A stretch of DNA of 64,000 bases from Paragordius varius. Lineage: Eukaryota; Animalia; Nematomorpha. The notes below the pieces were generated by a model, which had not been told where the DNA came from, did no database searches, and saw only the letters and a list, made by a program, of their open reading frames with translations. Shown here piece by piece: positions 1 to 52,663 of the stretch; positions within the stretch are counted from its first letter, which is position 1; the number at the start of each line of letters is the position of its first letter. Position numbers and translations under genes: made by a program. The stretch is taken from positions 1,550,001 through 1,614,000 of the forward strand of contig OZ176057.1 of assembly GCA_964247055.1 (NCBI GenBank), in the 5' to 3' direction.

Positions 1-374
1 ATCACCCTAAATAAATTAAGTGTTTTTTATGATTAAAATTTACCTAGATTTATTAATTTTTTTAAAAATTAAATTTTGTTTGTAATTTAATAATATTGAG
101 AAAATAATAAACTATGCCATAAACATATATTTCCTATCATTGATGGGTTTTATTAGCCCGAAAATTTATTTTTAAGGTGAATTTGAATTGTAATTTGGCG
201 GCTAGAGTATTTATCTCCTAGTTATTTTTAAATATGATATGCCTATGTTAAAATTTGGCACCGAGGGAATGCTTTGAGGCAGTTAAATTGCCCTAATGAA
301 ATGCAATACACTCTTTGGGTAATTAAAAATATTATAATTACTTTAAATATTTTTTATATTTAAAAGATTTATAC

Positions 375-413
375 ATGTCGTTGGTTCTTCTCTAGTTGTT
401 GATTGTGTGGTAC
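375..413 (-). CDS. Mucin-like gene micro-exon 14 (39 nt, TTQSTTREEPTT)
   Basis: ATTAG/GTATAA, phase 1-1. Confidence 0.8.
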
Positions 414-3400
414 CTAATTTTCATAAATAATTAGCAATTTTTTTAAAATATAACATAAGATACATTATTAACATTATATTTGATTTTTCTTTCAATTTGT
501 GCTATTATATCTAAGTAAAAATTAAAATTCTAAGGACAAAACGTAATATAAAGACAAATTTTTTCTTTAAAAGATAACCATACATTTTCCATCCTTAATT
601 TATCCTATTAAAAAAATTTGATAACACTCGAAAAATATGTAATTGATTGTGTTACCAATATACATCTCCATTTTCTATATTTTGCAGTTAAAAACAATGA
701 GTTAGTTGAATGTGAAAAAATCAGATTTAAAAAGTATGGTTGTCTTTTATAAAAAATTATTTATTTTAATATATTTACGTTTTGTCCGTATAGATTTCCA
801 ATTTTTACTGTATAGTTTGTCGAAACAAATTTTTTTTATAAATTATTTTTTTCCAACGTTTGCAAAGATTGTAATTTAAAATTGGTATTTATTTGGTAGG
901 AATCGGTTTCTTTCAACCAATGAGATTGGGCCTATTTTGATATAAAATTTCAGCAATGTTTGTAAAACCCAGCCCTTTTATTTTTAAGTATTATTTTTTA
1001 GGGCTAACGCCCACCCCCCCAAAAAAATATTTATTATAGCAATAACTGTTTTTATTTCAATTAGTGAGTTTTATAAAAATTCTATAATATGAATAATTTG
1101 CACTTAGAAATCCGATAATGAAATATATTATTTAAATTTTATCCTAACTAATACTTGTGCTAGGCGCTTCTGTAGCTGTTGAATGCGTGGAACCTACACA
1201 AGGAATATATTTATTTAATAATATATTTTTTAAAATCTGATAACAACCTTATATATAAAAATTATTCAAATTTTTAATATATAACTATATTTTCAAATTA
1301 AATATAATTTGTAAAATTTTTTTTATAATTTAAATACTTGTCACAGGTTCCGTAGTTGTCGAACTCGTAGCTAAATCATTAAAATATTGAATATAAAATA
1401 AATATTTTTTAAAAGTTATATATATATATATATAGAAAGGATAATTGTATCAAATTCAGAAAATTGGGAGGATTTTATTATATATATATATATATATATG
1501 TTTATATGTATAAAAGATAATAACTATTAAAATATGTGAAAAAAATTTGGGAATTAAATGTTGTCATATAAGGGATATAGATGCAAAAATTTCAAAAAAT
1601 ATCTGTTCTATCGATTAATATCCTAACACTTTATTACCTTTTCACTTTTTTGTCCCAGTTTACATATTGGGGTAATTTTATATCCCAGAGCTCATTTTTT
1701 CAAATAAACCATTAGTTATATTTATAAATTATTATTAAACATTGTTCTCATGTATTATTAGACTAAAATACTTATTTTTATATAGTTTTGTGACGACACC
1801 TATGTAAAATTTGGAAATCTGCGAAACACGATTGAAACAAAACAACTGGTATTAAAATCAAAATTTATCAAGTTTTGTTGGTAAAATGTAGCATGAAAGC
1901 TTTTCAATGTTAATTATTTATATTTTCTAACCCCAAATTCGGCTTGATACTTTAAATACTGTTTCTCAAATTTTAAAATCGCTGAGATGTACTACCCCTA
2001 AAAGTAATGAAGTGTTTATATATGCATTTTAATAAAATTAGGGCCCATTTTTTTAAAAAAACCATCTTAAAAAATATGTAATAAAAAATTCCTGTTCTCA
2101 AACCTTTTGGCACATTTTTTCTATATAATTCTTTTTCGAATAACTAAAAATGTTTGCATCTTAAAACTATTAGAGTATTTTTTATTTATTATAAATATTA
2201 TTACTTACAAAGTAAGTTTTTTACTTTATTAAATATTTGACCCTTGGTTAAAAGAAGCACCCCAAATCTATAATGCTCCAAAAATAAAAAAGTGTTGAAA
2301 TGTTTTATAAATATTTTTTTTTAATTTTAAAAATTATAAATAAACTTGTTGTAGACTCCTCTGTGGTTGCCGGTTGCATGGTAGCTTAATAAAAAAATGG
2401 GAATTTAATTATAATTTAAATATTTTTACAGTAAAAACTGAAATTATACGGACAAAACGTATAAATACAGTAAAATCTGAAATTATACGCACAAAATGTT
2501 AAAATATAAAGACAAATATTTTTTCTTAAAGACAACCATACTTTTTTAAACCTTTTTTCTCATATGTATAATTACAATTATAAAATACATAATATATTGT
2601 GTCACCAATGATAATTCTTAAATATGCAATTTAAAACAATGTTATATTTAAAAAAAATGAAGTTATAAAAGTATGGTTGTCTTTTGAAAAAAAAATTTGT
2701 CTTATTTTAACGTTTTGCTCGTATAATTCAATTAACTGTATAAAAACAATTTATTTAAAAGGCAATCATTTTTTAGACCTTAATCTATCCTATAAAAGTT
2801 TAATTACAGTTTTAAAATAAATAATTGATTTTATTACCAATATACATCTCTATTTCATAATGTGCAGTTTAAAACAATAATTTATAACTAAATAATAAAA
2901 TATGGATGTCTTTTTTAAAAAAATATTTTATTTATATTCTTATGTTTCCGCATAATCACTATTAAATCAATATTTAAATTATACACAAGTATTTTCTCGT
3001 TTTTTAATAATTAATAATGATATATAAAATGCAGAATAGTTGTTGTGTGATGTAGCTGTTTTTTATCTAGATAAAAAAATATAAAGAATAACATTTTTTA
3101 CCTAAAAAACAACCATTTTAACCATTTTTTATTATAATTTTAAACTGCAAAATATAAAATAGACTGTTAATTGGTAACACGATTAATAATGATTTTCGAT
3201 TGTATTTAAATGATTGTTATATGATAAATGAAAGTTTAAAAAAGTATGGTTGTCTTTTAAGAAAAAAATTAGTCTTTATATATTTACGTTTTATCCATAT
3301 TATAATTTAAATATTTATTGTATAAGCATTTTTATAATAATAAAATCGAGGTGGGAACAGTTTGTGGACAAAAACGGTATGTAGTTCTTAAACTGTTTAA

Positions 3401-6400
3401 TGTGTTATAATTTTTATTTTTTTTAATTTCCATCTTTTTGATAAAATATTTTAATATTTACTTCCATTTTAAAATACTTTATTTTGAAATTTTAGAAATT
3501 TTAAAAATATTAAACAATATAAATTTCTATGATCATTTTAAATGTTTTTATAAAAAAATTGACACTCTTTATACTATTGTGAAATAGATCCGGCCCATCG
3601 ACAAATATATATATATATTACAGAATCAAATTTTGACAAAAACACTATACCATTTACACTTCGATTCACCCTTGAACAATTCAAATTCATACTCGAATAT
3701 TTCAACATCCTTGAACAATTCAAATTCACCCTAAATATAAATTATGTGTGTTTGGGCAAATATAACTCATCATTAATATTATTATTTCTTATTGTTATAG
3801 ACTATTATTTTTTAGTATTAAATTAATATTAGATAAATTTCATAATTTTTAAATATATTAGTTTATTTAAGATGAATTTGAATTTTTACTGGGTAAATTT
3901 GAATTGTTCGAGGGTGAATTTGAATTGTTTAGGATGAATTTGAGCTGTAAATAGTGTACTTAGATCCAAAACCGAAATATTTTTTTGCAAAATGTATTTT
4001 AATTATATATCAAATCGGAAGCAGAGTCAAATTTAAAAAATATCAAAACACCAAAAAGCTATTCTTATTCTATATAAATACATGAATTTTTTTTTTATTT
4101 TCCCTAATACCCCCATACTACAATTCTGAATATCATAAGATTGACTTTATTTCCTCTATGCATCTTATTTATCTTTTAAATTTTAATAATTTTCGATTCT
4201 GGAAGTTCTAAATAAAACACAAAATCTTATTTAAAATTATTTAATTAGTATAGAAAATAAGCAACCAATATGGGTTAACATTATGTAATGATTTTTATTG
4301 TCCCAAATACAAATTTTTACCTATGTTAAATTTTTTCGAAATCTTCTCAGATTTGTTTATACCTTATATAAGATAGCTGTTGGTTGAAATAATTATGTTC
4401 TATCTTTTAAAACAACTTTTGTAAAATTGTATTATTACATTTTTTTAATAAAGCGAGTGTTTTATATAAACATTTAACAAATAACTGACAATTGACAATC
4501 ATTTTATCACAATAGCGTATGGTAGTATGAAATAAATCAAATTTTGTCCAAATTATATTAAAAGATTATGGTATTATGGTGAAAAAATGTTAAATTTCAC
4601 CCATTGGTTCTCATTTACCACACGCTACTGTATGCAGTAAATTTATATAATCAATTTTTTAATTTAATATTTCAAACTTGTAGTTGATTCTACGGTAGTT
4701 GTCGAGTGCGTAGTGGCTAATAAATATAATATAAATAAAATAAAATAATTTTATACATTTATATATCATTTGCACTTTAAGAGTGTCCTTGAACACTTCA
4801 AATTAGTCCTACAACTCTTTTTTGTTTTTAACTTTTATCAATCAGATCTTTTATAATTCATATATTTTTTAAACATATTATATTTATCCTAATCTTTTAA
4901 ATCCATATCAGTTTTTAATCATTCAAAAGCCGTTTATCCTCATAAGGAATTAAATTGTTCAATGGGGGTGAATTTGAAGTATAAATGGTAGAAAATAATA
5001 GAGATATTAGCATAGTATAACTATAACAATTTTAATATTTTAAAATTTATTTTAATTTTATAGAATTAAATTAATTCTATTAATTATTATATAATTAGTC
5101 AGATCCAAATTTATATTTTACACTTTTATCATCAAAAAATTTCAGTAAAATAAATTAATGTTTCAAAATAAATAAAATTTCCATAACTTTTGAATAAATT
5201 TTTATGTCTTGAAATCTAAACTCAGTTAAAAGGATAAAAGCGAACTCAAGAACTTTGTAATATTATAAAAAATATTAACTAAAAAATTTCAAACTTGGTG
5301 TCGTTTGATCGGCAGTCGTATTTGTTGATGCTAATAAAAAAATTAAAAAATATTAAAAATAAGATAAAATTATATATATATATATATATATATAATATTT
5401 ATATTAGATTGATTTTTGAAATAGAATGCGTTTTTAACATCTAATTTTGACAGCGCAAAGAAAAAATCTATATAGTTATGTTAGCCAAACATATCCGGAT
5501 TTTCGAGGGGCTTACGACTGATTTAAGAAAGTTATTACAACTTTTGTGCAATATGCTACTGCTCCATATCAGAAACTCGTATGATTTCCGCACCCTATGC
5601 TAATAAAAATTTTTGGTCAAAAGTTAATTGTTTTATTCCAAAAAATATTGTATTATTATATTTAAATAGTAAAACAATATTATAAAATATTTCATAAATA
5701 CATGGATTAATTTATAGTGGGCCCTAAATATCTCAACTTTCGAAACTCTTTTAACGTTCATAACTCTCAGAAAAATAACAAATATGTAGGCAAACCAATT
5801 TTAAAATTATAATTCCGATGCGATAAAAATCTTTATCATTATCGAATTATATGGAACAAATGTAATTATTTTGTTTTTATGTGCTTCAAAATAAAAAACG
5901 TCAAAATTTCCATAGTAACTTGTTTTTAATTTTTTGATGTTATTACTTAATTAAAATTGTCGGGGATAGGAATTTTTGCGTTTATATTATGAGGACAAAA
6001 TAATAAAAGAACCCACCAACATAAAAATCGTGTGAGCTATAATTAAATTTTATATTTCAAAAACTTTTATTTAATATTACAGTTTATAATATATTTTAAT
6101 TTTTTTTGGAATGAAGCAGTTGGTTTTCCTCAAAAAATTTAGCATATTGTGCACAATTTTACCAATTTATGGAGCTCATACCAAAAAAGTGATAAATACT
6201 TTCTAAGGACACCTGTATTTCTTGAAACTTTAATACTAGCGAATCCGAATACATTTTTGGAATTTATTTCACCTCAAAAAAAGTTTATTTTCTTTATTAT
6301 TTGGTAATTTAAGCTCTGATTTAAATCACATAGGAATTTATAAAAGCTCTGTTAAATTAGCCACCTCTTAGGGGCTGACATGCTGTAGAATTTGAAATCA

Positions 6401-9400
6401 ATTTAATAATTGAATAAAATTAAATGTGGGCATAAAAATAATTTAATGTATTTTTTAATATTATGCTTTGTTTTTATAAATAAATGAGAAATACCGCAAA
6501 AATATCATTTTATTATAAATATCACACTTAATTTTCAAATCATTTTTTATAAAAATATTTTTATATACTTGAAAGTGTCTCGGTAGTTGTTGGAATGGAA
6601 GCTAAAACAATTTTACATAATTTAAATTTTGTTTAAAAAATGTTTAATATATATATATATATATGGTATTTTTTAAATTAACCTATTAAAGTAACTTTTT
6701 ATTTTGCCAGGCTTTAAAATTGTAATATATTAATATTTAAAACTACATTTATATATTTTGTTTTAACATATAAATATTATAGAGACAAAATAAAAAGTAA
6801 AAGATTGATTTATAATAGTTTTTATAAATTAAGCCTAAATAATTGCATTTTTTTGGCAACCTAAAAAATAGGTGTATTTATTAAAAAATTGCCCTAAAAT
6901 TTAGTGTATCGCTTTTTCAATTTATATTTGGCGCTACGAACAAATCCATTCTTTTGATGTTCGGTCCTCCAAAATATATTTGCAGCCAGCAAAATTAAAA
7001 TACAAAATCTAAGTATAAATAATTTTTCATAAACAAATTTTCTGATCTAGTCACTCCGTATTTCGGCAATGAACAAGGAAAAATTGTTAAAATTAATAGT
7101 AATTTTTTACAGTCTTGTGTTGAAGTCTAATAAAAAATTTATTAATTCTGATATATGACCGTCATGCTTTTTGATCCAATAATGTGGCCCTTGAAGCTAT
7201 TTATGTTGGACATCCCTGAATTAAATTTTAAATCCCCACCTTATAACTCAGAAAAGTATCTTAAAAATTAACCAAAATTTTGAATCCGTAAATATAAATT
7301 CCAAATTTTTATTTCAAAATATATCCTAGTATGAATTTGCTTAAAATTTATATGCTTAAATATGTACAAGGAATAATACTTAGCTTTGCACATAAACCTA
7401 TAAACTTATTTATATTCTCTAGGATTATATCTCTCATTAAAGTAAAATTATTTTATTAAAAGAACCAAAAATTAATTAGGACAATTTCATAGAGTATGTA
7501 TGGAAAGTATTTTAAAGTACTGAAATATATTTACGTATAGTCGTAGTTTCCGCTGTAGAATTATGCGTGATGTCTAAATTAAAAATTGTTATAAAATAAA
7601 GCCTCCCTTTTATGTCGTCCTTAAATGTTCTTTAAATAAGTGACAACTAATTATTATCTATGGAGAACATGCAATTTCTCGATTTTTCTCTATTACAGTA
7701 ATTCCTTAATTTTTATCATTTTTTATTCAACAAACCTTTTCAAAACTCACTAGTTTTTGTTGGGTATTATGGAACCCGTTAATAAGCCAGAAATAATGAA
7801 AAAAATTGAATTTAATCAACTTGTCCATCTTTCTCCCATACGAAGAATATATTTTACACTTCAATTTCAAAAATAAAATATACCACAATGAGCGCAAATT
7901 AAGTTTAGAGTTTTCCTGAATTAATCTTGAAACTGGTTACTGCTAGGATGTCAGGAATATTTGCGATTTTATTGAATATGTTTACAAGTGATGGGATGTT
8001 TTATATGGTTTGTGAGTGACATTAAAAAGAATACATATTAGCAGGCTCAAAACGGCAACAATCAAGAAATTAAATTTTATATGTGTAGAGGTTTTAATAT
8101 TCACTTATTTAAAAAACTTTTATTTTTACTAATGACGATACTAAACTGTTTTTTTTTAAATTTTTGAATACGTGTATAAAGAAATTTAGGTTATTAAAAT
8201 AGAATATATATACTATCTAAATTATGGATCAACAAGTTTAATTTAACAAAAATTGTGCTAAATCAGTCACAACAAGTAAGATGCAATGAAAACTGAAATT
8301 ATACGGACAAAACGTAAAAATATAAAGACATATATTTTTTTCAAAAGTCAACCATACTTTTTTAAACCGTAATATTTCTCTATATAAATATAAAAATATA
8401 AAATATTACCAATATGCATATTAGCATACTTGGCAATTTAAAACAATTAGTTATATTTTTCTATTTTATCTTTTGAAAAAAATATTTGTCTTTAGAATTT
8501 TACCTTTTGTCCGTATAATCCATTTTTTACTGTATTTAAATTAATTAGTTATACGATTCCAGGTTTGAAAATATCTGAATTCGCTTTGCTTAGCCATTTT
8601 ACTAACATAACTTCTAATTTAAGGACTTTTGGTTCTATTGTACCCAAACACTGTAATTCATTTTTTAATTTTTTATACACACTATTCAATCAAATATAAT
8701 TTTTGTTTACATTAAATTGTACAATAAAAATAGAACTTATATGAACAAAACGTAAAAATAAAAGAACAAATATTTTTTTTAATAAATCTTAATTCATAGA
8801 ATTATAAGGTATTGTTCTTTTAAAAGCATGGAAGAGAAATTTATCTTGGTAACACAATCAATTTTGTATGTAACAAATCAGTGTAATATTGTAATAAAAA
8901 TGGAAAGTGGTGGCTTTGTGATCTGTTTCCGGAAAACCGGTAGACCCATTCAAATCCAAATATCGAAAAAATATAATCATTAAAAATGCCCCGACAATAG
9001 CTTAGCCCTTTTTTGAAAAACCGTGTGAAAAACGGGTTTTTTGAAAACAGAAGTCCACAAAAATCGTGTCTTTGAGACAATTTTGCGGGGAACGTGTTGG
9101 ACCATTCAATTTCAAATACAATTTTTGTTTAGTTATTTTTGATTGCGCCGAACATAGTCGGCTCGCTTTTTTAATTTAGGCCCTCTTTTTACCCGCTCCC
9201 CCCGTAAAATGCCATTTTTTTTAAAAAAAAGTCCACAAAAATAATTTTTTAAATCTATTTTTCGCCCAAGGTATGAGACCGTAAAAATTTTATAAGGATT
9301 CTACGTATTCCCTGTTAAAAGGCAAAAATTTTGGTCAAGCGTTTCTTTGATGATAGCTGCTGAATAAGGAGCTACTCGCCACTCGTCATATCTAAGTGCT

Positions 9401-9985
9401 TTTGGGGCTAAATTTGCGAAAACCTATCAGGTCATATGAGTTCAATAGCTGCTTAAAGTATTAACCGTAAAAAGTCAAAAATTTTAGCCGAGCGGATTTG
9501 AATTAGCCGTTAAATAGGCCCTTTACTCCCTAAAACTGCGCTATCCTTGAACTATTTATTATTTAGTTATGAAGCCATTCCTCCATAAACTATTAGGAAT
9601 GAACGATGATTGTATAGAGAGAAAATTTTTGTCTACTACATTTTTATATTGGCGTCTGGGTAGGGGGCTACCCGCTTACAACTCCGCCATCATATCGAAA
9701 CAGCATGCCTTTGGAGCAAAATTCCCCCAGAAGTCCGAAGGACTTCCTCGGGCTGCGTAGCAGCACGAGATTTACGATAGTAACTAATAAATTTATTCTC
9801 CCTTTTACTATAATTGTTTAATTTATTATCCCTAAATTTGGTAAAATATAATTCAAAAGAAAAAAATAAAAAAATATTTTTGAAATACCCAACGAATTTA
9901 TCATTATGGATGATGGTATAGACATCTCTACAGCTATTTAAAATTATTTTTTAATTGTACATTTCCATTTAAATATTATTTTTTA

Positions 9986-10043
<58 letters not shown>

Positions 10044-13000
10044 CTCGTAGTTGTAGTGTTTAACGGGGTAGCTAAATATTGATAAATGTAAAATAATTTT
10101 TAACATATATATCATTTTTCAGTTATCAACTTCAAGCAAATCAACATTATTTCATTCAAACGAATATTTTTTCAACCAAACATATATTTTTTTCACCAAA
10201 GCAACATTTTTTAAGCAAAACAATTTAAGCAAATGCAATATTTTTCAAGCAGAGACAACTGAAAAAATGTTGTCTTTGCTTGATATTGTTTTTGCTTAAA
10301 AAATGTTGAGTTTGACTGAAATATAAAATTGAATATAAACAGACACAATGTAAGAATAAAGAAAACTACTTTTTTAAAAAAGACCCTCATACTTTATAAA
10401 CTTTGATTTTTGCTACACATAAACTATATAATATAATGGTAAAATTTATAATCAAGACTATTATTAATTTACATCTATATACCTTATTTTTCTACGGGTT
10501 ATTTAAATTAAAAAGATATTTGTACTTTATTTGAACATTATATCTGTAAAATTTCAACTTTTGCTATATTTTTTTTTATATCTTCTGTCAATTTCTACAT
10601 AAATTTACCAGTAGTTACGACAATCACCAATGTGTCTAAAATTAAATAAAAATGTAAAATTGTTTTTAATATTTAAATATTATAAAATATTCATGTTTTT
10701 GACGACATACCTGGAATTGTTTGATTGTGTAAATCGTGCGGCGCTAAAAATATATATTAAAAACTATCATAAAATATAATATATTGATAAATCCTGTATA
10801 TATGTTTAACAAAGAATTTAGCGCGACCTAAATAATAATCCTAAAAAATTTGAAAGAGTTAACTTTTTAAGTTGTTATGCTGCCAAAAAGAATCATTTAA
10901 AAATTTTATTATTGATTTTTTAAAAAGAATAAGTTTTAGTAAACTAAAATGACATTTCAAATCAATTTTATTTTAAGAAAGTGATATTTTATAAACCTGG
11001 TAATTTTTTTTTAAATTAAATTACAGTTTCAATGAAAATTATAGGTAGAGTAAGTCCCTCAATAATATTCTAGTTGATAATAAATATTAAATGTAATATC
11101 AAGGATTTAAATCAAACAATTATTATCAACAGTTTTAAAACTGCTCCTACCTAATTCGATCTTTTTCCATTTTATACAAACAAACAACGGATTAAAAAAT
11201 CATTAATTACCAAATCGTTACAACGTATACTGTGGAATTTGTAATTGAGTAAAGCGATTTGGCCACAAATAGAAAAATTTAAAAAATATTTTCGTAGAAA
11301 TAATGGGTGTAAAAAGTTATATAATAATTTGGTCCAACATTTTTGACATAAGAACGACATATATCGTGAATATTCTTTGGAAAAGGATATTATGTTAGAA
11401 AAATTAAATGACAAGAGAGGAAGATCCGAAGACGCATTCGTTAGATAGATGAAATTTTATCAATTTTCAAAAATAAATTGGCAAAAACTATCTGCAAAAG
11501 CCCATGACAGAATCGACAGGAGGAATTTTTCCTATAACGCGCAAACGGTTGATAATGGACTACAAGCTCGTAATCAACAAGGTCTAATACAATGCCGCGG
11601 TACTACAACGAATTATTTAGCATTGGCTTAATGATATCCTTGTCTTTTGTAATCAAAAATAAATTTGATATATTTTCTCACAAGAAAAGCATCCCCAGAT
11701 AAAAAGAACAAGTATACGGACGCAACACTTGCCTTTTTTAACTAATCAATTTTTTCACCTCTATCATACGAAACGTATCATTAATTTCCTAAATCTAAAA
11801 TTTCCAATTATTTGTAACTATTTTCAACTTTGTGGGTGGACAGCATAAAAGTAAATATAAAAATCACATCCTTACCCTTGTATTTCCTTTATCAATGTGC
11901 ACACCTATGTTAAATTTTTGGTGATATCCCATCCAGAGAAATCCATAAAGGGCATTATTAGAAGTTAAAATTACCTCTACATTTGAAAAGACCGTATTAT
12001 TCGTAGGAGGTCAGACAAAATTTTTTTAGCAACTAAAAACCTAAATTCAATTATTTGTAACAGAGTAAAATACTTTAAAAGACATGCTAATATGATAAGT
12101 TACACTTTTTAAGTTACCATCATTTAACTGATATAAAAATGAAAAAACTTATTTGATACTGTTAAATTATGGCTTAAAAAAGGTGTCTGTTTAGGTATAA
12201 TAAAATCGTAAAGTATTCTAGGAGAACCGAATAACAAAAATATTTAATATAGCGGGCACAAAATGAAATCAACTGGATATATATATAGATAAAATTATTT
12301 ACTCGTTATTTCATAGGTATGGGATAATATCAAATCACCTATATTATTGAAATAAATATATTTTTCAATTTAAATCATTTAATATAAATTAATATACAGT
12401 AAAAATAAAAATATAAAACAAACACAAAAAGTAAAAGATTGATCAGGAACCATATCTTTTTTAACATTCATAATTACATTTGAAAAATACGTAAAACTTG
12501 AAAAATATACAAACTAAACATAATATAAAAACAAATTTTTTTTATAAAAAATAACCATGCTCTTTCAAACCTTAATTCTTCCCTAATAAATTTGATTACA
12601 ATTATAAAGTGTATAATTGATTGCGTTACCAATATAATTCTTTATTTCAATATTTGCAATTTTAAGCAATGGTTTACAATTTCAAAAAATTAAGATGAAA
12701 AAAGTGTGGTTGTCCTTTGAAAAAAATATTGTCTTAACATATTTACGTTTTCGTATAATTTGACTGTTGTGTAACTAATTCATATATCTGTTTTGATTTT
12801 GCTACCCAATTCATAATTTCAAGGTTAAAAAATATGATTTTATAAACTATTTCAATATAATATATAAATAAAAAATTTCAAATAAATATTAATAATTATT
12901 TTTCTACTTGAAGTATCATTGAAAAAGTAATTGTCATCGTCTATCTCAACATAAGGCACCGCTAAATTAGTATATATTAAAAAAATTGATTAGAAATTAA

Positions 13001-13471
13001 AACCAAAACATTCGTTTAGGTACATAAACGGTCAAAAACAACACAATTCTAAATTTTTTTATAGAACTGGAACCAAATTCCAAGCAGTCCAAAACTTTCA
13101 TTTACGTGCTATTTAAGATATGATATAGTTTCATTTAGGATTTTCGAGAAAGAATGTGAACATTTATTAAATATATGTGGATTTTTAATTTTTAATCAAT
13201 ATCAAAGTAATGTTATAGGCTACTTTTTTACACTTTTTTTCCATATTTCAACTATATAGTATAGTTTGTGTGGGAAAAATCAAGATTTAATAAGTATATG
13301 GTTGTCTTTTAGAAAAAAAAAGATTTGTCTTTTAGTTTTTCCATTTTATCTTTATATTTTTGACATTTTTAATGCAATAATTATAATGATATCAATACTT
13401 GTAGTTTCAGTAGCAATCGAAGCAATAACACATTGGCACACAAGAATTAATATGATATATTTGATAACCAT
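375..13471 (-). CDS. Micro-exon gene for a secreted/surface Thr/Ser-rich mucin-like glycoprotein (3' part lies beyond window start)
   Basis: 14 exons joined in frame with GT-AG and no stops: 13471-13399, 12961-12908, 10743-10711, 10635-10609, 10071-10045, 9933-9889, 7573-7535, 6601-6569, 5330-5295, 4716-4678, 2384-2346, 1370-1338, 1193-1155, 413-375. Protein MVIKYIILILVCQCVIASIATETTTVPYVEIDDDNYFFNDTSTPHDLHNQTIPDTLVIVVTTATPLNTTTTTVEMSIPSSIMINSLDITHNSTAETTTIPSIPTTTETLSTSTNTTADQTTPTTTHSTTTVESTTTTMQPATTEESTTTTSSTTTEPVTSSTHSTATEAPSTSTTQSTTREEPTT (185 aa). Signal-peptide-like start and five N-x-S/T sequons. Confidence 0.85.
1155..1193 (-). CDS. Mucin-like gene micro-exon 13 (39 nt, STHSTATEAPST)
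   Basis: TGTAG/GTATTA, phase 1-1. Confidence 0.8.
1338..1370 (-). CDS. Mucin-like gene micro-exon 12 (33 nt, TSSTTTEPVT)
   Basis: TTTAG/GTATTT, phase 1-1. Confidence 0.85.
2346..2384 (-). CDS. Mucin-like gene micro-exon 11 (39 nt, TMQPATTEESTT)
   Basis: TTAAG/GTTTAT, phase 1-1. Confidence 0.8.
2429..2738. mobile_element. MITE family C copy with tandemly duplicated left TIR
   Basis: TIR occurs at 2429 and again ~38 nt later. Confidence 0.85.
3650..3954. mobile_element. MITE family A copy
   Basis: CCATTTACAC start, inverted 21-bp arrays. Confidence 0.85.
4678..4716 (-). CDS. Mucin-like gene micro-exon 10 (39 nt, TTHSTTTVESTT)
   Basis: ATTAG/GTTTGA, phase 1-1. Confidence 0.85.
5295..5330 (-). 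CDS. Mucin-like gene micro-exon 9 (36 nt, STNTTADQTTP)
   Basis: ATTAG/GTTTGA, phase 1-1. Confidence 0.8.
6569..6601 (-). CDS. Mucin-like gene micro-exon 8 (33 nt, SIPTTTETLS)
   Basis: TTTAG/GTATAT, phase 1-1. Confidence 0.8.
7535..7573 (-). CDS. Mucin-like gene micro-exon 7 (39 nt, ITHNSTAETTTI)
   Basis: TTTAG/GTAAAT, phase 1-1. Confidence 0.8.
8890..9780 (+). mobile_element. Non-autonomous Helitron of the same family, inside an intron of the micro-exon gene
   Basis: Homologous to 45928-46560; 3' hairpin CTCGGGCTGC-GTA-GCAGCACGAG about 11 nt before GATAG|T (degenerate CTAG|T). Confidence 0.7.
9889..9933 (-). CDS. Mucin-like gene micro-exon 6 (45 nt, VEMSIPSSIMINSL)
   Basis: AATAG/GTATTT, phase 1-1. 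Confidence 0.7.
9990..10041. repeat. (TA)n microsatellite; similar tracts at ~1420-1500, 5372-5392, 15045-15071, 24422-24445, 33168-33214, 42003-42050, 43119-43144, 59760-59806
   Basis: Direct reading. Confidence 0.95.
10045..10071 (-). CDS. Mucin-like gene micro-exon 5 (27 nt, TPLNTTTT)
   Basis: TTTAG/GTATTA, phase 1-1. Confidence 0.8.
10609..10635 (-). CDS. Mucin-like gene micro-exon 4 (27 nt, TLVIVVTT)
   Basis: TTTAG/GTAAAT, phase 1-1. Confidence 0.75.
10711..10743 (-). CDS. Mucin-like gene micro-exon 3 (33 nt, PHDLHNQTIP)
   Basis: TTTAG/GTATGT, phase 1-1. Confidence 0.8.
12908..12961 (-). CDS. Mucin-like gene exon 2 (54 nt, VPYVEIDDDNYFFNDTS)
   Basis: TTTAG acceptor, GTAGAA donor, phase 1-1. 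Confidence 0.8.
13399..13471 (-). CDS. Mucin-like gene exon 1 (signal peptide MVIKYIILILVCQCVIASIATETT)
   Basis: ATG, Lys then hydrophobic core, phase-1 donor GTATTG. Confidence 0.85.
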
Positions 13472-14131
13472 TTTTTATTTTTATTTTTTTTTAAAAAAAT
13501 CAAAAAGAAAAACTGAAATTAATAATTTAGCTTACGCTAAAATGTATTGAATATACAATTCCCATAAAAATATGTAAAGAGGCTAGCTATATTATGTTCT
13601 GTGACCTAACAATAAACCTATATATACATATATATTAAAGGTCAGAAGATATTTTTGGTTTTAGATTATTTTTATTGCGTTTTTATTCAATAAAAATTAT
13701 ATTTAAATTTGTTTGGATTTAATAATATAAATATTTAACCTTATAATATTCATATTAGGTCAAATTACGTTTTGGTAAAAAATTTTCATATAAATAGAAA
13801 AAATCATCAATTTCTTGGTTTCAAAAAATTGGCGGTTAATTCATATAGAACAACTGATCATTTGAAGATAGTTTAAACTTTTTAATCAATTAAGAACAAC
13901 AATCTAATAAAAAAATGTTAATGTGACCATTTAAATATAATTATTAAATATTTTTTTTATAAAATATATCAATTTTTAGGCGTTTTAAAACATAAATAAT
14001 AACAGTTGTGTTTAAAAGCTTTTAATTGTTATTTCTCACATTTAAAGCAAAGGATTAGCCAAGTTGGTGCCTGAGAAATCAAAATTATTTAACACCCGTA
14101 AAAATAATTTAATGTTCCGGCATATATTTAA

Positions 14132-15040
14132 CATTCCATGACTTTTTCGGGTAATCTTATATCCCACAGCGATTTGAAATTGAAATAGCTTAATAAGCAT
14201 TTAAGGTATTAAGCCGAACTTAAAAATATGCTTTTTAATAATAATAAATAAATTTTTTAAAAAAATGTAAAATTGCAAAAAATCCTCATCTCAATCTTTT
14301 TCGCCGCCATTTTTTTCTTTAATTTTTTTAAATCGCTAATGCAACAATCAAAAAAATTATTATGGTTAGAAAATGTTAATTAAGTTTAAAAGCCTCCAGG
14401 TTATGTTTCAGCAAAAACTTGATATATTTTAATTTTTTAGGCAAAATGTTTATTTTTTGGGTAAAAATATTTTTCCACAATATTTACCCCATTATTTTAC
14501 GACTTTATTCAAGGCTTGCCCATTTTGAACGGATCCAATAGCTAAAAACTTTCTGAGCCCACATCTAAAATTTAAAATTTTATAAAAATATTGTTTTGCC
14601 TTTTATATGTAGTCTATGATATATTTTAGTAATATTTTTAAAAACGAAGCCATTCACTAAAAAAATTTTAACAAAATGTGCTCATTTTCATTTTTATATG
14701 AGGCATTCACAAAAATGGTAATAACTTTTTGATATAATTCGTAAGGCTCAAAAGCAAATGTGACCTAAGAACCCTAATTCATCTTTTAATAATTTGTCTA
14801 ATGTGTATATTCTTCCGAATATATTTTATAGAATAATAAAATATATATGTATATTTTTATACCTTTTGAGTTTTATGCAAAAGAAGAGAAATTTAATCCC
14901 TCTCATTAGAATAAAACTTATTGAATTATTTCATAAGTGCATTTTTTATATTCAGTTATTACTAAAACGCTTTTATCTTCATTGATATTTTTATATTCTT
15001 TCGATTCAAATTGGGTATCTAAATGACTCCAGACTATACT

Positions 15041-15074
<34 letters not shown>

Positions 15075-15661
15075 TATAAGCTACTGAAAGAAACTGTTCA
15101 AATATATATTAACGCTTCTATCTTAATAAAAAGCATATAACTTATCTAAATAAAATTTAGTTTTGAAAAAAAAATTCCATATCTTCGACCCATTTTTATT
15201 TTACAATATTTTTGCAAAATATCGTGGTTATTTGATTCACATGAAATAAAGTTACTTTTATTTAGCATAAACATTATAATAAAGAGAAAAAGTGGTTTAT
15301 TTTGCATTATATATATTTAGCTACTGCACACACAAGTTAAGTAAATTTTTACATGGTTTGCTCATAAAAGATCAAGTTTTTTATGTTAATGTTTTTATTT
15401 CAGTGCATTAATGTTATATATATATATATTTATATATATATACAAATTTTGCTATAATTTTAATTTATTCCAATTAGTAAACTGCCGTGGAATCCACAAA
15501 TACCCCAGTGAGAATCTGGGGACTGAAATGAATAGTATCCAAGTTTTAAAAGCTAAGGAAAGCATATTACTAAATTCGGCCTAATACCATAAATCCATTT
15601 TCAAGTATTCAAATTTCAAATCGCTCTGGAATATAAAACTACCCCAAAAGGTCAGGAAATG
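14132..15661. mobile_element. Family D-related TTAA-flanked element (~1.5 kb) containing a decayed family B copy
   Basis: TTAA|CATTCCATGACTTTTTCGGGTAATC ... ACTACCCCAAAAGGTCAGGAAATG|TTAA. Confidence 0.72.
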
Positions 15662-17680
15662 TTAAAATCATTCAATACAATAGGCAAATAAATTTATATA
15701 ATGGTTTGAAAACGTAAAATTTTTGGTAAGCTTTCGATCTTTACCAGCCAATACTCGATATTTCTTAATTGTAAAATTAGCTGCTTCTTTTAATGTTTAG
15801 TTTAAAAGTTACAAAACTATAAAAATTATAACATAAGCTTTTTATCTAATAGAGGCGGAAATGCGAAAAAAATATCAAAAGAAAGATATATTAGAATTTG
15901 GTAGTTTTGGTTTAGGGTTTTATTATTGCTGCACATAAAATACAATGCACTTATAATTTATTTGGGTAGAAAGATCGTCTATCTATACTTTTTATAAATA
16001 AACTATATATTTTTAATAATTTGCCAGGCATGATGATATAGTAGGTAGGGGGCTCGCGTGTTAATTACGCATTTCCCATCATCACAGTCAGCCCTGGCCA
16101 GGCGAGTGTTAAAGTTTTCACTAGTCCGGATACAAGTTATTCATTTACCCATCAAACCAGTGGTTCTCAAAAATGGGGGTGCAGAAAATTGGGGAATTTT
16201 ATTACAAAATTATATTAGAAGCAAATTAAAGGATTTCAGGCGCGAATTATCAAGATTTGTCACCTGTATGGAAAAGATATTTTAAAAAATGCAGATATGA
16301 AGATCTCATTGATTGGGATATTTATGTAATTTTAATATATTTTACATTTTCATCTTGAATTTTATGAGAGGGGGCGCAAGAATTTTTTTTATTAATTCGG
16401 TGCTTAAAAAATGTGGGAACCTCTGCTATTGTATATATATAAAACAAAAAAAATAAAAAAAGAATATTAAAATAATTTTTTTGTCTATGTAATATAAGTC
16501 CTTACCCTTTTGCACTTTGAATCACCCCGGACTATATTTAATACGATACTTTTAAAAAACTAATGAAAGAAACATTACAATGAAATTTTAAGCTCTATCC
16601 TAAAAAAAATTATATAAATAAGCTAAAGTATCCAAATAAAATTTAGTTTTGAAAAAATACCAAACTACCTCAACGCAATTTTTATTAATTAGTTTTACAA
16701 AATATCGTGTTTATTTGATTCTAACGCTAAAATTAAAGCTATTACTTATTTAACATAATATTAATATAAACAGAAAAAGTGGTTTATTTTGCATTAATTT
16801 TATATTTGGCTAATGCTTATATGTCATGTTTAATTTCTTGAGGTTCAAACATAAAATAAAATATCAAGTTTTTGATTTTTTCTGATGAATCATTTTTATA
16901 TTTTCTGCATCAATGTTAAATAGATTGGCATTGCTTTATTTCAAATAGAAATATTTAATTTCAAACAGGCCAAGACCCAAAGTCCCTAATTTGAATCAGA
17001 GTGTAGAGTGAGGACTTAAATTGTATACGGAGGCAAAAAAATAAAAAAAAAATTTTTTTTGTATTCTTTTTTTTATTTTTTTCTAATTTTTAATTTTTTT
17101 ATTATTAAAATTTGAAGTCTCTTTTATAACTGACCTAATTCCGGAAAGGCTTTAACACTCGCCTGTTCAGGGCTGACAGTGATGATGGAAAAATTGCGTA
17201 GTTGCGGGGTTTCGTCGCCCTACCTTTTAGACCATCACACCTCGTAAATGTACCAGCATATATCTTATTAAAAATAGAGTGGAATAACGATCTTTCCACC
17301 TAACTAAATTAATTATCTGTTTTGAAATTTAATGTGCAGCACAAATAGAGACCTAAATCAAAACTACCTAATCCTATTTTTTTTCAGAATTATTTTAACG
17401 GTTTAGATTAAATGACTTTTACATTTTTTTACAGTTTTCTACTTCTAATTAAAATTGGGACAGTTCCAAAACATCATTAGAATAAGTAGCTGATTTTACA
17501 ATCAATATAATCAAGTTTTTGCTGGCACACAAAAAGCTCGAAGTTCATGATTTACATTTTTGTACCACTATATACACTTATTTACCTATTGTATGCACCA
17601 TATTTATATTCCATGATCTGGGGGTAGTTATATATCGTAGAGCGATTTTAAATTTGAATTTAGATTAGGCCAAATTAACG
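15590..17680. repeat. Diverged long inverted repeat (arms ~15590-16150 and ~17130-17680)
   Basis: Reverse-complement matches throughout, e.g. CATCATCAC.GTCAGCCCTG..CAGGCGAGTGTTAAAG, GGTAGTTTTG.TTTAGG, TACAATAGG.AAATAA. Confidence 0.75.
16158..16425. mobile_element. hAT-type MITE
   Basis: CAGTGGTTCTCAA ... TGGGAACCTCTG termini; no matching TSD seen. Confidence 0.55.
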
Positions 17681-36200: not shown

Positions 36201-39200
36201 TTCAAGTTGGTCCTTGAACAATTCAAGTTGATCCTTGAACAGTTCAAATTGGTCCTTGAACAATTCAATTTGGTCCTTGAACAATTCAAGTTGGTCCTTG
36301 AACAATTCAAGTTGGTCCTTGAATTTGTAACTATGCCAAAAACTCTAAACCATTTAAATTAAATATTTTTTATATATTTTATTAAATTTTAGGTTATTAT
36401 CGTTATTTGCAATAGTAATTTTGATTATCCTAATTTAATTTTTAATAATTATGAACCTATTTAGTGTAAAATAATCAGAAATATTTGAAATAACCATCAT
36501 TTATTTAATTTTTCATAAAATATATTTATTGTATATTATAGAATAATCACAAATATAAATATATATATGATTATGAGTGTGTATAAGGATTTCCTGATGC
36601 TGCATTGATTAGATTTTTAGTTATTTTTTAATTTTAAAATTAAGCTTAAATACGTATAAATAATAAATACAACGAACTCTGATGTATTGAGGTAATTGAA
36701 CTAAATACAAACATCAAAATATTCGTATTAGAAAAAATCACCTTTTGCAATATTATAAAAGGGCAGAGATTATGATAGGTGAGATCGATTGTGTTATACA
36801 ATGGAATAATATTAAATTAATTTATTATATAATTCTAAAAAAGGACAGCACTAGACCATCGTCCCTATTGAATGATGCATTGTGTTTTTTAATTTCTATG
36901 ATTCGCGTATAAGACGCTTGTTATCATGTTATATTTTGTTGTTATGACCTTGATGTCGGCTATGTAGCGTTTTACATTGACAAACGTCTTCATAGAGACC
37001 CGAATCGGGTATTGTTAATTGGATGTATCCAGAATGTTCTCGTAAAAGAACGTTTTCATCTCCTTTTCCGCTATAGAGACAGTTACTGGATATCGCTAGC
37101 TAAAACCATTATATTTATTTTATAAATTTAACTTACATATTTGACATGAAATATCACACCTTATAAGTTGATTTAAACAGACGATAGTTTTCATGTATTT
37201 TAAAAAAATCGTCTATTTAACTAATATTTATATTTATTCCAAAAAATAAAATGATTATTATTTTATTTTATATTTTAGATTCTAGGAAGTATTCTAAATT
37301 ATCTGATCAAGATAAAAACGACTTATAAAGAGTGTTATTATAGCGGGTGAAAGTATAATAAATATGGCACGCTCTCTAGATATTAAATAACGTATCATTA
37401 GTAAATACAAACAAAATATAAATGAAAACACAAATCATGGAGGAAAAGATATAAAAAGGTTGATGATAGTATTGTTGCCCTTATTGAAGGCCAAATTACC
37501 ATAAATCCACTCATAACACTAAAATCACTAAATTGTTTTTAGTTGAAAAAAATATCCGCCTTTCTAATGCAACTATTAATAATGTTATCACAAAGCTTGG
37601 CATTACGATCAAACAAACTCATATTGAAATTGATAAGGTTAACGATCCTTTAAGTTTAATTAAACGAAAAGAATACGCCCTTTGGTTTAATGAAACCTTT
37701 GGCTGCGACTATTCCAAAATAGTGTTCATAGATGAGTCAGGATTCCATAACCATTTAAGAAGAAACTATGGAAGGTCTAAGAAGGGAACCAGAGCGATTG
37801 CAAAGTTGCCAAACGTTAAAGGAAGAAACGTTACTTTGATAGCAGCTCTAGGTTCGGCTGGAATAGTGTACTCACATATAGAGTCGGAAAGAAATGTTAA
37901 TGCTAATATTTTTGCAAATTTTTTTCAGAATCTCTGTATACATCTCAACTCATCTAATTTGGAAGATATTCATTTTATTTTGGATAACGCAAAAATTCAT
38001 AATAGAAATTCATTAAATAATATTGCCGCCATTTATTCCTATAAAATTTCATTTCTATCTCCATACAGCTTTATGCTAAATCCTATTGAAAATGCATTTT
38101 CCAAAATCATAAATTATGTTTGCAGCATGTTATCAAGGGACGTGGACATATCACTGTTCGAGTTAATTTTAGAAGCCTCTAAAGCTATCACAGAATCTGA
38201 TGTGATAGGATATACAAAATTGTTAATTAAGAATCTAATTAATGCAGCATCTGGAAATCCTTATACTCATAAATAATCATATATTTATATTTGTGATTAT
38301 TTAATATACAATAAATATATTTTATGAAAAATTAAATAAATGATGGTTATTTCAAATATTTTTGATTATTTTATACTAAATAGGTTCATAAGTTATAAAA
38401 ATTAAATTATGATAATCAAAATTACTATTGCAAATAACAATAATAACCTAAAATTTAATAAAAAATAAAAAAAATATTTAATTTAAATGGTTTAGAGTTT
38501 TTGGCATAGTTACAAATTCAAGGACCAACTTGAATTGTTCAAGGACCAACTTGAATTGTTCAAGGACCAACTTGAAATGTTCAAGGACCAGCTTGAATTG
38601 TTCAAGGACCAATTTGAATTGTTCAAGGACCAACTTGAATTGTTCAAGGACCAACTTGAACTGTTCAAGGACCAACTTGAATTGTTCAAGGACCAACTTG
38701 AATTGTTCAAGGACACTCTTGAAGTGTAAATGGTTTATTATAATAATGCAACCAAAATTAAATCAAACAATCTATTATAAATTGCCAAATGTATAGTGAA
38801 AGAAATATAGTTTAGCATAAAAAATGAAGTACAAAGGTAAAAATGAGAGCTAAATTAAGTATGGCATCTAAAAAAAACTTTATTTAACTAAAAATTTCAA
38901 CCAAGCAATTTGCTGGTCACCTGCTTCTCAAGTCTGAAAATAAAATAAGGGTGAACAATTCCTTGCTATATACAAAAATATGTATTATAAATAGGCTTGA
39001 ATTATGACTCAGTTTTTTACAAGAGCTGAATCGTCCATAATTCAGAGAGTATGGCTAATATTAGCCGCTTAGTTTTGGGTTTGAAGTATGTTGTAATGTG
39101 TAGTGGTATACGCAATCAAATTTAAATAGTAAAATAAAATTTTTATTATCAAAATCACATGGGAACCAGTAATTAAGGGGGTGGAACCGAGTTCCATCCC

Positions 39201-49580: not shown

Positions 49581-50179
49581 TTAAAAATTAATCTTTTCAT
49601 AAACACATATTTCCCAGTCATTTGTGCATAAGAGTCGCCGTGTTTCAGCCTACAGATATAAATAATATATAATTTTGTAAGAAATGTATTAAATATGATA
49701 AATTGAATTACACATTAGATTACATTTAAATCTGGATGGCACATAATTTCTCTAACGGGGACAGATGTACGCTTTTCTGTAAAACATACCGTTTGTACAG
49801 GTTTGCCAAAATTAACCAAAGAGTCAGCTTTTATAACAGGCTTAATCTTTTTCGCAATCGATTCTCTTTTATATTTTTGCAATCTTTGCTTTAAAGATTT
49901 TTTTAATCGCTGCATAAACCAAACAAAGTTTTGATGGCGGTTACAAAAAACTATTTTTCGCCATCGATACCAAATTATCAAGCCCATTAAAAATTCGTCT
50001 TTAAAGTAAATCTTAAAAAATTATAAAAATTTAAAAATGTATCATAAAAAATATTAAGATATGGCACAACTCAGTCAAGTCCTCGTAAAAATAATAAAAT
50101 GAAGTATTATTGTTTGTTAAGTACCTGATTTTCCGAATTTTAACAAAAAGTCTTCAATGTTCACAGGGTTACTAGTCAT
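49581..50179 (-). CDS. Orphan 3-exon gene copy A, 132-aa basic protein with short N-terminal hydrophobic segment
   Basis: Exons 50179-50125, 49998-49724, 49649-49581; introns 126 and 74 nt, GT-AG. Protein MTSNPVNIEDFLLKFGKSDEFLMGLIIWYRWRK...HPDLNAETRRLLCTNDWEICVYEKINF*. Exon lengths, splice sites and stop position are shared with copy B, while intron 1 diverges. Confidence 0.7.
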
Positions 50180-52069: not shown

Positions 52070-52663
52070 TTAAAAACTAATCTTTTTATATATAGATATC
52101 TCACAGTCATTCGTGCATAAGAGTCGCCGTGTTTCAGCCTAAAAATATAAATAATATATAATTTTGTAAGAAATGTATTAAATATGATAAATTAAATTAC
52201 ACATTATATTACATTTAAATCTGGATGGCACATAATTTCTCTAATGGGGACAGATGTACGCTTTTCTGTAAAACGTACCGTTTGTACAGGTTTGCCAAAA
52301 TTAACCAAAGAGTCAGCTTTTATAACAGGCTTAATCTTTTTCGCAATCGATTCTTTTTTAAATTTTTGCAATCTTTGCTTCAAAGATTTTCTTAATCGCC
52401 GCATAAACCAAACAAAGTTTTGATGGCGGTTACAAAAAACTATTTTTCGCCAACGATACCAAATTATCAACCCCATTAAAAATTCGCCTTTAAAGTAAAA
52501 TTTACAAAAATTAGTTTAGTAATTACATAAAAAGGGTTAATATATGTCGCAACCAAGTCAGTCAAGTCCTCGTAAAAATAAATAAATGAAGTATTGTTTG
52601 TTAAGTACCTGATTTTCCGAATTTCAACAAAAAGTCTTCAATGCTCAAAGGCTTAAATGTCAT
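52070..52663 (-). CDS. Orphan 3-exon gene copy B, 132 aa
   Basis: Exons 52663-52609, 52487-52213, 52138-52070; introns 121 and 74 nt. Protein MTFKPLSIEDFLLKFGKSGEFLMGLIIWYRWRK...HPDLNAETRRLLCTNDCEISIYKKISF*. Confidence 0.7.

Follow-up and report, generated by a model that had tools for sequence, protein, structure and literature searches.

Micro-exon genes (MEGs) of schistosomes open with a signal-peptide first exon and continue with a series of very short, symmetric exons between introns of 0.1-5 kb (PMC4350168; PMC4671649; bioRxiv 10.1101/2023.06.21.545858). The signal peptide lies mostly in a longer 5' flanking exon, there is a longer 3' flanking exon too, and the products are small, about 7-20 kDa with a median of ~7 kDa and a longest member of 189 aa (PMC4350168; PMC4671649; bioRxiv 10.1101/2023.06.21.545858). 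The size limit of a MEG micro-exon has been set at <36 bp (PMC4671649), and a range of 6-81 bp, in which most are 15 bp long, has also been given (bioRxiv 10.1101/2023.06.21.545858). Products of the MEG-4, -8, -14 and -15 groups are rich in Thr, Ser and Pro and are O-glycosylated. Exon skipping is documented in MEGs, transposable elements are enriched in and around them, ordinary gene finding misses them and they are reported as restricted to platyhelminths (PMC4350168; PMC4671649; bioRxiv 10.1101/2023.06.21.545858).

A similar design is found in insects, where the aphid cassette genes KQY/KHI and the bicycle and megacycle genes combine a conserved signal-peptide exon with numerous micro-exons scattered across tens of kb (PMC7495047; PMC9168663). 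Such genes can be very large, a megacycle gene containing >100 micro-exons, and 33 of the 37 exons of KQY1a are 15 bp or smaller (PMC7495047; PMC9168663). In bicycle genes, nearly all internal exons share one phase (phase 2) and the products carry paired CYC motifs (PMC9168663). Aphid cassette and bicycle genes belong to the salivary gland, and both RNA and proteomic data support them (PMC7495047; PMC9168663).

The window analysed here is a stretch of 64,000 nucleotides from the horsehair worm Paragordius varius (assembly GCA_964247055.1, contig OZ176057.1, positions 1,550,001 to 1,614,000). Its minus strand carries the following chain of exons, given with their translations and the searches that recovered them:

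E1, 13471-13399, minus strand: 73 nt; ATG start, signal-peptide-like, then TETT; phase-1 end at a GT donor
E2, 12961-12908, minus strand: 54 nt; VPYVEIDDDNYFFNDTS, acidic, NDT sequon; GC 0.35; moderate-to-low confidence
E3, 10743-10711, minus strand: 33 nt; PHDLHNQTIP; GC 0.45, acceptor tttttag, donor gtatgt; moderate confidence
E4, 10635-10609, minus strand: 27 nt; TLVIVVTT; GC 0.41, acceptor attttag; moderate confidence
E5, 10071-10045, minus strand: 27 nt; TPLNTTTT; first Thr-rich module; Thr/Ser filter and Thr-codon island
E6, 9933-9889, minus strand: 45 nt; VEMSIPSSIMINSL; GC 0.36; weakest candidate
E7, 7573-7535, minus strand: 39 nt; ITHNSTAETTTI; Thr/Ser filter and Thr-codon island
E8, 6601-6569, minus strand: 33 nt; SIPTTTETLS; Thr/Ser filter and Thr-codon island
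E9, 5330-5295, minus strand: 36 nt; STNTTADQTTP; Thr/Ser filter and Thr-codon island
E10, 4716-4678, minus strand: 39 nt; TTHSTTTVESTT; Thr/Ser filter and Thr-codon island
E11, 2384-2346, minus strand: 39 nt; TMQPATTEESTT; Thr/Ser filter and Thr-codon island
E12, 1370-1338, minus strand: 33 nt; TSSTTTEPVT; Thr/Ser filter and Thr-codon island
E13, 1193-1155, minus strand: 39 nt; STHSTATEAPST; Thr/Ser filter
E14, 413-375, minus strand: 39 nt; TTQSTTREEPTT; phase-1 end at a GT donor; Thr/Ser filter and Thr-codon island

The internal exons (27-54 nt, median 39) are without exception preceded by AG, followed by GT, a multiple of three in length, of phase 1-1 and free of stops in the phase-1 frame (13/13), which is the only reading frame open in every exon. 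The introns measure 75-2315 nt, the one of 75 nt lying between E3 and E4. E9 and E10 share the donor flank gtttgaaat, and E13 has a second donor 6 nt downstream that also keeps the frame. A preliminary description of this DNA had outlined the same gene as GC-richer islands forming a signal-peptide exon and 13 phase 1-1 exons, with 556 coding nt and five N-glycosylation sequons. All fourteen exons were found again at these places on the minus strand with identical lengths, their total is indeed 556 nt (185 aa), GC content is 0.415 in exons versus 0.229 in introns, and the sequons NDT, NQT, NTT, NST and NTT are all present. Since E14 closes with a phase-1 donor that is still open, 374 nt short of the window edge, the gene appears to continue past the left end; what lies in the window would thus be its 5' part, the full protein being longer than 185 aa.

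The resemblance to schistosome MEGs pointed out in the preliminary description is borne out by the signal-peptide exon and the chain of symmetric phase-1 micro-exons (PMC4350168; PMC4671649; bioRxiv 10.1101/2023.06.21.545858), and it extends to invisibility to ORF calling and to TE-rich surroundings. The symmetry typical of MEGs is seen in all 13 internal exons, and the 73-nt E1 corresponds to the 5' signal-peptide exon as judged by a heuristic rule. Five of the 13 internal exons are shorter than 36 nt and eight fall outside this strict limit, whereas all are within the 6-81 bp range. MEG products are small, whereas the predicted product of this locus, still unfinished, has at least 185 aa. 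Common descent with the schistosome genes is unlikely, because the host is a nematomorph and MEGs are reportedly platyhelminth-restricted. With the aphid cassette and bicycle genes, the locus shares a predicted secreted product, a signal-peptide-like exon and a chain of micro-exons, and with bicycle genes also the nearly uniform phase. It differs from bicycle genes in having phase 1 rather than phase 2 exons and no Cys motifs, and none of the aphid cassette or bicycle products is a Thr-rich mucin like the one predicted here.

The coding nature of the chain was assessed with a filter for Thr/Ser exons (AG-3n-GT, 24-60 nt, GC>=0.40, open phase-1 frame, >=50% Thr/Ser). On the minus strand of positions 1-14000 it returned 11 matches corresponding to nine distinct exons (E5 and E7-E14), against 0 matches in a control of 114 kb (plus strand of 1-14000 and both strands of 14001-64000). 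This enrichment is specific to the strand and the locus, and the nine Thr/Ser-rich exons lie far beyond chance. A splice-blind search for at least four ACN codons in eight gave eight islands on the minus strand of 1-14000, all on listed exons, and no decayed exon copies in the introns. Across E7-E14, C occupies 69% of second codon positions and A 57% of first positions, the third being mixed, and the whole coding sequence draws on each of the four Thr codons (ACA 23, ACT 19, ACG 12, ACC 7); this periodicity and variety argue for constraint at the protein level and not for a DNA repeat. The direct-repeat search revealed no long repeat spanning exons in the window, so that the exons are not copies of a mobile element, and Rfam and tRNA searches matched no ncRNA or tRNA as a source of the GC islands.

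Such a pattern is difficult to reconcile with the view that the region holds no functioning gene, but the remnants of a dead one or GC-richer patches, of chance or repeat origin, with AG and GT on either side by accident. Nine islands sharing one motif, one strand and one frame, with intact AG/GT borders, lengths of 3n and no stops, outside any repeat family, speak against it, as do the codon-position pattern, the synonymous variety of Thr codons and the lack of decayed copies. The splice-site scores, which are unremarkable, the weakness of E2 and E6 and the RNA data described below, possibly from another organism, are what this view can call upon, and we consider it very improbable. The hidden gene of the preliminary description, lying off the ORF track, is thus very probably real.

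The four less secure exons (E2, E3, E4 and E6) were chosen under the assumption of symmetric exons. Symmetric open candidates arise by chance at ~8 per kb (112 in 14 kb), and E2 and E6, being drawn from this pool, are not individually distinguishable from chance candidates. A splice-site matrix built from the nine secure exons and evaluated by leave-one-out discriminated weakly: most acceptors ranked within the top 2-16% of AG sites, and donors were unremarkable. The acceptor of E2 (aatttag) ranks in the top 4% and that of E6 (aaatag) in the top 16%, and those of the secure exons E13 and E14 receive low scores. Splice signals discriminate weakly in this AT-rich DNA, and the matrix cannot settle E2 or E6. 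One further candidate of 27 nt at 13094-13068, outside the listed exons, is also open in phase 1.

The introns and the window contain two repeats of note:

513-673: a palindromic MITE of ~300 bp, present here as an intronic copy; further copies at 2429-2590, 8284-8406 and 12522-12647
8930-9730, intron 6: very high-copy GC-richer repeat, with a DNA word depth ~10^4 times the single-copy level

A MITE lies ~85 nt upstream of E11, and insertions of this kind inflate the introns. The repeat at 8930-9730 had no tRNA or Rfam match. A direct-repeat search of the window and an alignment of exon flanks found no duplicated unit of exon plus intron, yielding only MITE copies and AT-rich background. At ~25% GC and rich in DNA transposons, the DNA resembles the published hairworm genome, which has 26.9% GC and 63.8% repeats (bioRxiv 10.1101/2023.06.26.546503).

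Sequencing runs gave information on variation and, to a lesser extent, on expression. In a second individual (run X4) a different base at 7573, the first base of E7, changes the junction codon; it is the only exon difference among those listed, and 110 further differences from the window exist beyond these. A relative was suspected in run X5, labelled 'organism B' and containing 0.32 of the words, but its contigs proved identical to the window at low depth, and the idea was rejected. RNA-labelled runs with the same species label contained 0.00 of the sampled words from the 6-kb 5' half or from exon 1 with its upstream sequence, in an index that is nearly blind to the spliced form, exons of 27-39 nt holding few 31-mers. 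Two such runs (X6 and X8) compared with 7530-13529 gave no match save one spurious piece of 18-32 nt. Both were also blank on the very high-copy repeat and may therefore derive from another organism, so that their silence weighs little either way.

The putative signal peptide in E1 is a segment of 20-24 aa with one Lys, a 13-residue hydrophobic core and, at -3/-1, the small residues of ASIA. Judged by eye and by a simple rule for hydrophobicity, both heuristic, the 73-nt exon has the layout that had been claimed for it. Hydrophobic ATG-ORFs are frequent in this AT-rich window (10 in 128 kb of strand), and the case for E1 accordingly comes from its Thr-motif tail and phase-1 donor and not from hydrophobicity by itself. 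Its 3' end (...ACTACAA|gt) repeats the motif and donor context of the Thr-rich exons and so links E1 to the exon chain.

The mature part of the predicted protein (165 aa) contains 37% Thr and 56% Thr+Ser+Pro, in line with the Thr/Ser/Glu/Pro-rich, mucin-like composition noticed earlier. The proportion of Thr+Ser+Pro reaches 68% in the E7-E14 part, which consists of eight consecutive Thr-rich modules of 11-13 aa, as expected of a mucin-type Pro/Thr/Ser repeat domain. Such a composition suggests a secreted or surface-bound mucin-like protein that would carry O-linked glycans. Classical mucins and sialomucins such as CD164 likewise combine a signal peptide with Pro/Thr/Ser-rich repeats and with potential for N- and O-glycosylation. 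In proteins of the CD164/endolyn type, a Cys-rich domain sits between two mucin domains, and a transmembrane segment and a sorting motif at the C-terminus complete the protein. The locus could accordingly belong to an ordinary membrane sialomucin (CD164/endolyn-like) or to another anchored mucin, of which the window would show the ectodomain, with the Cys-rich, transmembrane and cytoplasmic parts lying further left and the micro-exons being incidental to how this genome builds its genes. A signal peptide, a Thr/Ser-rich N-terminal domain with N-glycosylation sequons and a gene that clearly runs on beyond the window would suit this assignment. However, Cys is confined to the signal peptide, the 185 aa contain no Cys-rich or other recognisable domain, and none of the defining Cys-rich, SEA or transmembrane parts is visible in the portion of the gene within the window; we regard it as improbable. 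It overlaps with the explanation that we prefer and differs from it only in anchoring and family assignment.

We favour, as the probable explanation, the 5' part of a real and unannotated minus-strand gene for a secreted or surface mucin-like O-glycoprotein, with modules produced by exon duplication and splicing that is mostly constitutive by default. E1 would supply a cleavable signal peptide and end in phase 1, and E2-E6 would encode a short, less repetitive N-terminal stretch whose exact exon set is uncertain. In the Pro/Thr/Ser domain that follows, each module of 11-13 residues (approximately S/T-T-x-S-T-T-T-E-x-x-T-T) would occupy its own 33-39-nt phase 1-1 exon. The most likely origin of these modules is a single 1-1 exon that was duplicated in tandem again and again, a process that by itself would explain both uniform phase and symmetry; the introns would have diverged since, taking up MITEs and other repeats. 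Comparable arrangements exist in vertebrates, where the titin PEVK region, elastin and the 54-bp exons of fibrillar collagens encode low-complexity repeat modules with one short in-frame exon each, and all exon borders of elastin split codons alike. These exons were made by tandem exon duplication, and cassette skipping generates length isoforms from them. They differ from the present case in composition and in being generally longer (45-84 nt and more), and to our knowledge none of these proteins is a Thr-rich secreted mucin. The Pro/Thr/Ser repeat arrays of mucins are typically contained in one large exon and not distributed as one repeat per micro-exon.

By the same anatomy, length variants are mechanically possible. 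E1-E13 end in A, G or C and never in T, hence no junction codon among them starts with T, whatever exon follows, and any subset of these symmetric exons could be skipped without frameshift or stop. The preliminary description had linked the absence of stops under skipping to the first bases of the exons; the absence itself is confirmed, with 0 of 91 ordered pairings giving a stop codon, but the first bases play no role in it and the result is trivial given the missing terminal T. From E7 onward, 21 of 28 pairings give a Thr or Ser codon at the junction and the others Pro or Arg.

These properties would suit a MEG-like variant generator, the reading proposed in the preliminary description, in which combinatorial skipping of symmetric micro-exons yields isoforms of a secreted or surface glycoprotein, for instance at a parasite-host interface. 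Weak splice sites and micro-sized exons would favour alternative use, and a signal peptide followed by a Thr/Ser/Pro-rich product recalls MEG-4, -8, -14 and -15 (PMC4671649). However, the same symmetry and uniform phase result without selection for skipping when one 1-1 exon placed after a phase-1 signal-peptide exon is duplicated in tandem, so that neither these features nor the trivially stop-free junctions are in themselves evidence of such selection. Of the 13 internal exons, eight are too long for the <36-bp MEG limit (PMC4671649), the product is apparently a long repetitive mucin and not a ~10-kDa protein, and the available RNA-labelled runs, possibly from another organism, yielded no isoform or transcript. 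A variant generator is, in our view, unlikely, and an ordinary mucin spliced mostly constitutively would be the default reading.

The published annotation of Gordionus comprises 10,320 genes with a BUSCO completeness of 71.6% (bioRxiv 10.1101/2023.06.26.546503). In the literature searched, the one paper naming both 'Nematomorpha' and 'micro-exon' is apparently a flatworm phylogenomics study, and no class of micro-exon genes appears to have been described for the phylum. It is conceivable, although we think it rather doubtful, that horsehair worms evolved a large repertoire of genes made of a signal peptide and symmetric micro-exons independently of flatworms and aphids, and that the mucin of this locus is varied in repeat number and order by combinatorial skipping, giving a variable coat or secretion at the parasite-host interface. 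If so, a third parasitic or plant-parasitic lineage would have converged on the same gene design, with a bearing on how frequently the MEG design arises by convergence and on how incomplete hairworm gene catalogues may be. Should splicing be confirmed, ~13 kb of seemingly gene-free, MITE-filled DNA would prove to hide a secreted-protein gene missed by standard annotation, and a mucin repeat domain could be said to be built one repeat per micro-exon.

The window comes from an animal and is very rich in AT (20-36% GC per kb); its GC content and load of DNA-transposon-like repeats agree with a published hairworm assembly, which has 26.9% GC and 63.8% repeats (bioRxiv 10.1101/2023.06.26.546503). 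Read through on the minus strand, positions 1-15000 present short GC-richer islands amid AT-rich sequence, bordered by (t)ttag, attag or similar on the 5' side and by gta or gtt on the 3' side. A preliminary description had assembled these islands into a hidden gene with a signal-peptide exon and 13 symmetric exons, each starting and ending in phase 1. We re-derived this exon chain by script, which placed all 14 exons at the claimed minus-strand positions and found every internal exon symmetric and phase 1-1.

Exons of the candidate micro-exon gene (window positions, strand, length)
13471-13399, minus, E1, 73 nt
12961-12908, minus, E2, 54 nt
10743-10711, minus, E3, 33 nt
10635-10609, minus, E4, 27 nt
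10071-10045, minus, E5, 27 nt
9933-9889, minus, E6, 45 nt
7573-7535, minus, E7, 39 nt
6601-6569, minus, E8, 33 nt
5330-5295, minus, E9, 36 nt
4716-4678, minus, E10, 39 nt
2384-2346, minus, E11, 39 nt
1370-1338, minus, E12, 33 nt
1193-1155, minus, E13, 39 nt
413-375, minus, E14, 39 nt

Separated by introns of 75-2315 nt and spliced in silico, these exons give 556 nt with an open reading of 185 aa. The last exon, E14, finishes in phase 1, its GT donor lying 374 nt from the left window edge; with this donor still open, the gene is incomplete within the window. The predicted product begins with a signal peptide of 20-24 residues, which contains all of its cysteines, and continues with an acidic and partly hydrophobic stretch encoded by E2-E6. 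E7-E14 then contribute eight modules, each 11-13 residues long, with a core S/T-T-T-E and an end T-T or similar. Threonine, serine and proline reach 68% of this modular part, and the mature product (165 aa) contains 37% Thr, 12% Ser and 7% Pro. The five N-x-S/T sequons announced earlier are all present. Such a predicted composition is that of a mucin-type O-glycoprotein.

Symmetry alone proves nothing here, since AG..GT segments of 24-60 nt that are symmetric and open in phase 1 are frequent in this AT-rich DNA (the minus strand of 1-14000 has 112, or about 8 per kb). When a GC content of at least 0.40 and at least 50% Thr/Ser were additionally imposed, the same strand returned 11 matches corresponding to nine distinct exons (E5 and E7-E14), and none was found in a 114 kb control made of the plus strand of 1-14000 and both strands of 14001-64000. 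Ignoring splice sites and frame borders, a search for at least four ACN codons in eight detected eight islands on the minus strand of 1-14000; all eight fall on exons of the chain, and the search met no decayed Thr-codon copies in the introns. Phase 1 is the only frame that stays open in every exon, and GC content is 0.415 in exons vs 0.229 in introns. Neither a tRNA nor an Rfam family was matched in the gene region, and in a direct-repeat search the exons belonged to no repeat family. The codons of E7-E14 have C at 69% of second positions, A at 57% of first positions and mixed bases at the third, and the coding sequence as a whole draws on all four Thr codons. This pattern and this codon variety are the signature of constraint at the protein level, not of a DNA repeat.

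Confidence differs between exons. It is high for E1, E5 and E7-E14, moderate for E3 and E4, and lower for E2 (GC 0.35) and E6 (GC 0.36, with a weaker acceptor). An additional 27-nt candidate outside the list, at 13094-13068, is as frame-compatible as E2 and E6, and a small matrix of splice signals, with the secure exons as its training set, has weak discriminating power. AT-rich DNA often contains hydrophobic ATG-ORFs, and the window has ten of them; E1 is credible because its phase-1 end carries TETT and the ...ACTACAA/gt context common to the repeat exons. For its core of E1, E5 and E7-E14, the gene is very probably real.

Two kinds of repeats occupy the introns.

Repeats within the introns (window positions)
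513-673, 2429-2590, 8284-8406 and 12522-12647, palindromic MITE of about 300 bp, four copies, each in a different intron
8930-9730, GC-richer repeat in intron 6; in X4, a run from a second individual, its DNA words reach a depth about 10^4 times that of single-copy sequence

The MITE ends resemble CAGTAAAAAyTGAAATTATACGGACAAAACGT and its centre resembles AAAGACAACCATACTTTTTT; two of the four copies precede an exon (E11 and E14) by 85-100 nt. Its word depth makes the intron 6 repeat a very high-copy element. It matched no tRNA or Rfam family, and a published hairworm genome paper describes SINEs as lacking.

Words sampled from the 6-kb 5' half or from E1 were absent from RNA-labelled runs of the same species label, and two such runs, X6 and X8, gave no match when mapped on 7530-13529, not even on the high-copy repeat. 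This blank weighs little, because spliced micro-exons have almost no 31-mers in common with genomic DNA and because the RNA-labelled runs are small. Since even a repeat of about 10^4-fold abundance went unmatched, X6 and X8 may come from an organism other than that of the assembly; mislabelled hairworm RNA data are on record for Chordodes, according to a preprint (bioRxiv 10.64898/2026.02.03.703548). Another run, X5, was considered as a related organism and rejected, its DNA being identical to the window at low depth. In X4, plus-strand position 7573 is G vs T in the window, the sole difference within a 226-nt contig piece. E7 begins with this base, and the variant alters the junction codon.

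Elsewhere in the window, other ORFs deserve mention. Just upstream of the micro-exon gene, two similar small minus-strand ORFs (~15150-15307 and ~16640-16793), about 1.5 kb apart, both start with MQNKPLFLF...; their similar flanks suggest that a small gene or repeat, hydrophobic at its start, was duplicated in tandem. Of two plus-strand ORFs at 37533-38276 and 43189-43470, one carries a DDE_3 transposase domain (E 8e-23) and the other has a Sarcoglycan_1 match (E 2e-9) to the C-terminal part of that family and is thus one exon of a conserved gene. Two near-identical 90-aa ORFs (MGLIIWYRWRKIVF...) lie 2.5 kb apart on the minus strand (49715-49987 and 52204-52476), with no Pfam match.

In extracellular proteins, phase-1 modules following a signal peptide are a classical pattern (Patthy's 1-1 module rule). 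The simplest account of the exon array is that one phase-1-1 exon, following a phase-1 signal-peptide exon, was duplicated in tandem, and that the introns later diverged and acquired MITEs and a high-copy repeat. As every duplicate inherits its phase, uniform symmetry requires no selection for skipping. By frame and junction codons, the predicted exons would nonetheless permit skipping: 21 of the 28 pairings among exons E7-E14 create a Thr or Ser codon at the junction. The earlier statement that no skipping combination creates a stop is true for all 91 ordered pairings; the exon starts to which it was attributed are not the operative reason, and stop-free junctions are trivial because T never ends E1-E13. 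The MEG-like architecture is real, and that the gene generates variants by exon skipping, as its likeness to schistosome micro-exon genes (MEGs) might suggest, seems unlikely.

For the build of the repeat domain, the closest analogue is found in structural genes with one repeat per exon, such as titin (PEVK), elastin and collagen. The MEG-type layout proposed initially does match the published one, where a 5' signal-peptide exon precedes symmetric micro-exons with introns of 0.1-5 kb (PMC4350168; PMC4671649; bioRxiv 10.1101/2023.06.21.545858). Several MEGs, including MEGs 4, 8, 14 and 15, carry regions rich in Thr, Ser and Pro, for which O-glycosylation is predicted and which were likened to mucins (PMC4671649). 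However, schistosome exons are below 36 nt and mostly of 15 nt, whereas the median here is 39 nt; the product is longer and would continue past the window, the RNA-labelled runs searched showed no isoform, and the locus belongs to a different phylum. The aphid KQY/KHI cassette effectors and bicycle/megacycle genes similarly combine a signal peptide with numerous micro-exons of one phase spread over tens of kb, but differ in their phase 2, CYC motifs and exons mostly of at most 15 bp (PMC7495047, PMC9168663). By analogy, the locus would work like a micro-exon gene; we do not place it in the MEG family, since its exon sizes agree in part only and the likeness is one of architecture. In the part of the literature covered, a flatworm phylogenomics study is the sole match that names 'Nematomorpha' as well as 'micro-exon'. 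The locus is a credible hidden gene of unusual design, undescribed in the phylum, and offers a Thr-rich mucin example of the micro-exon design.
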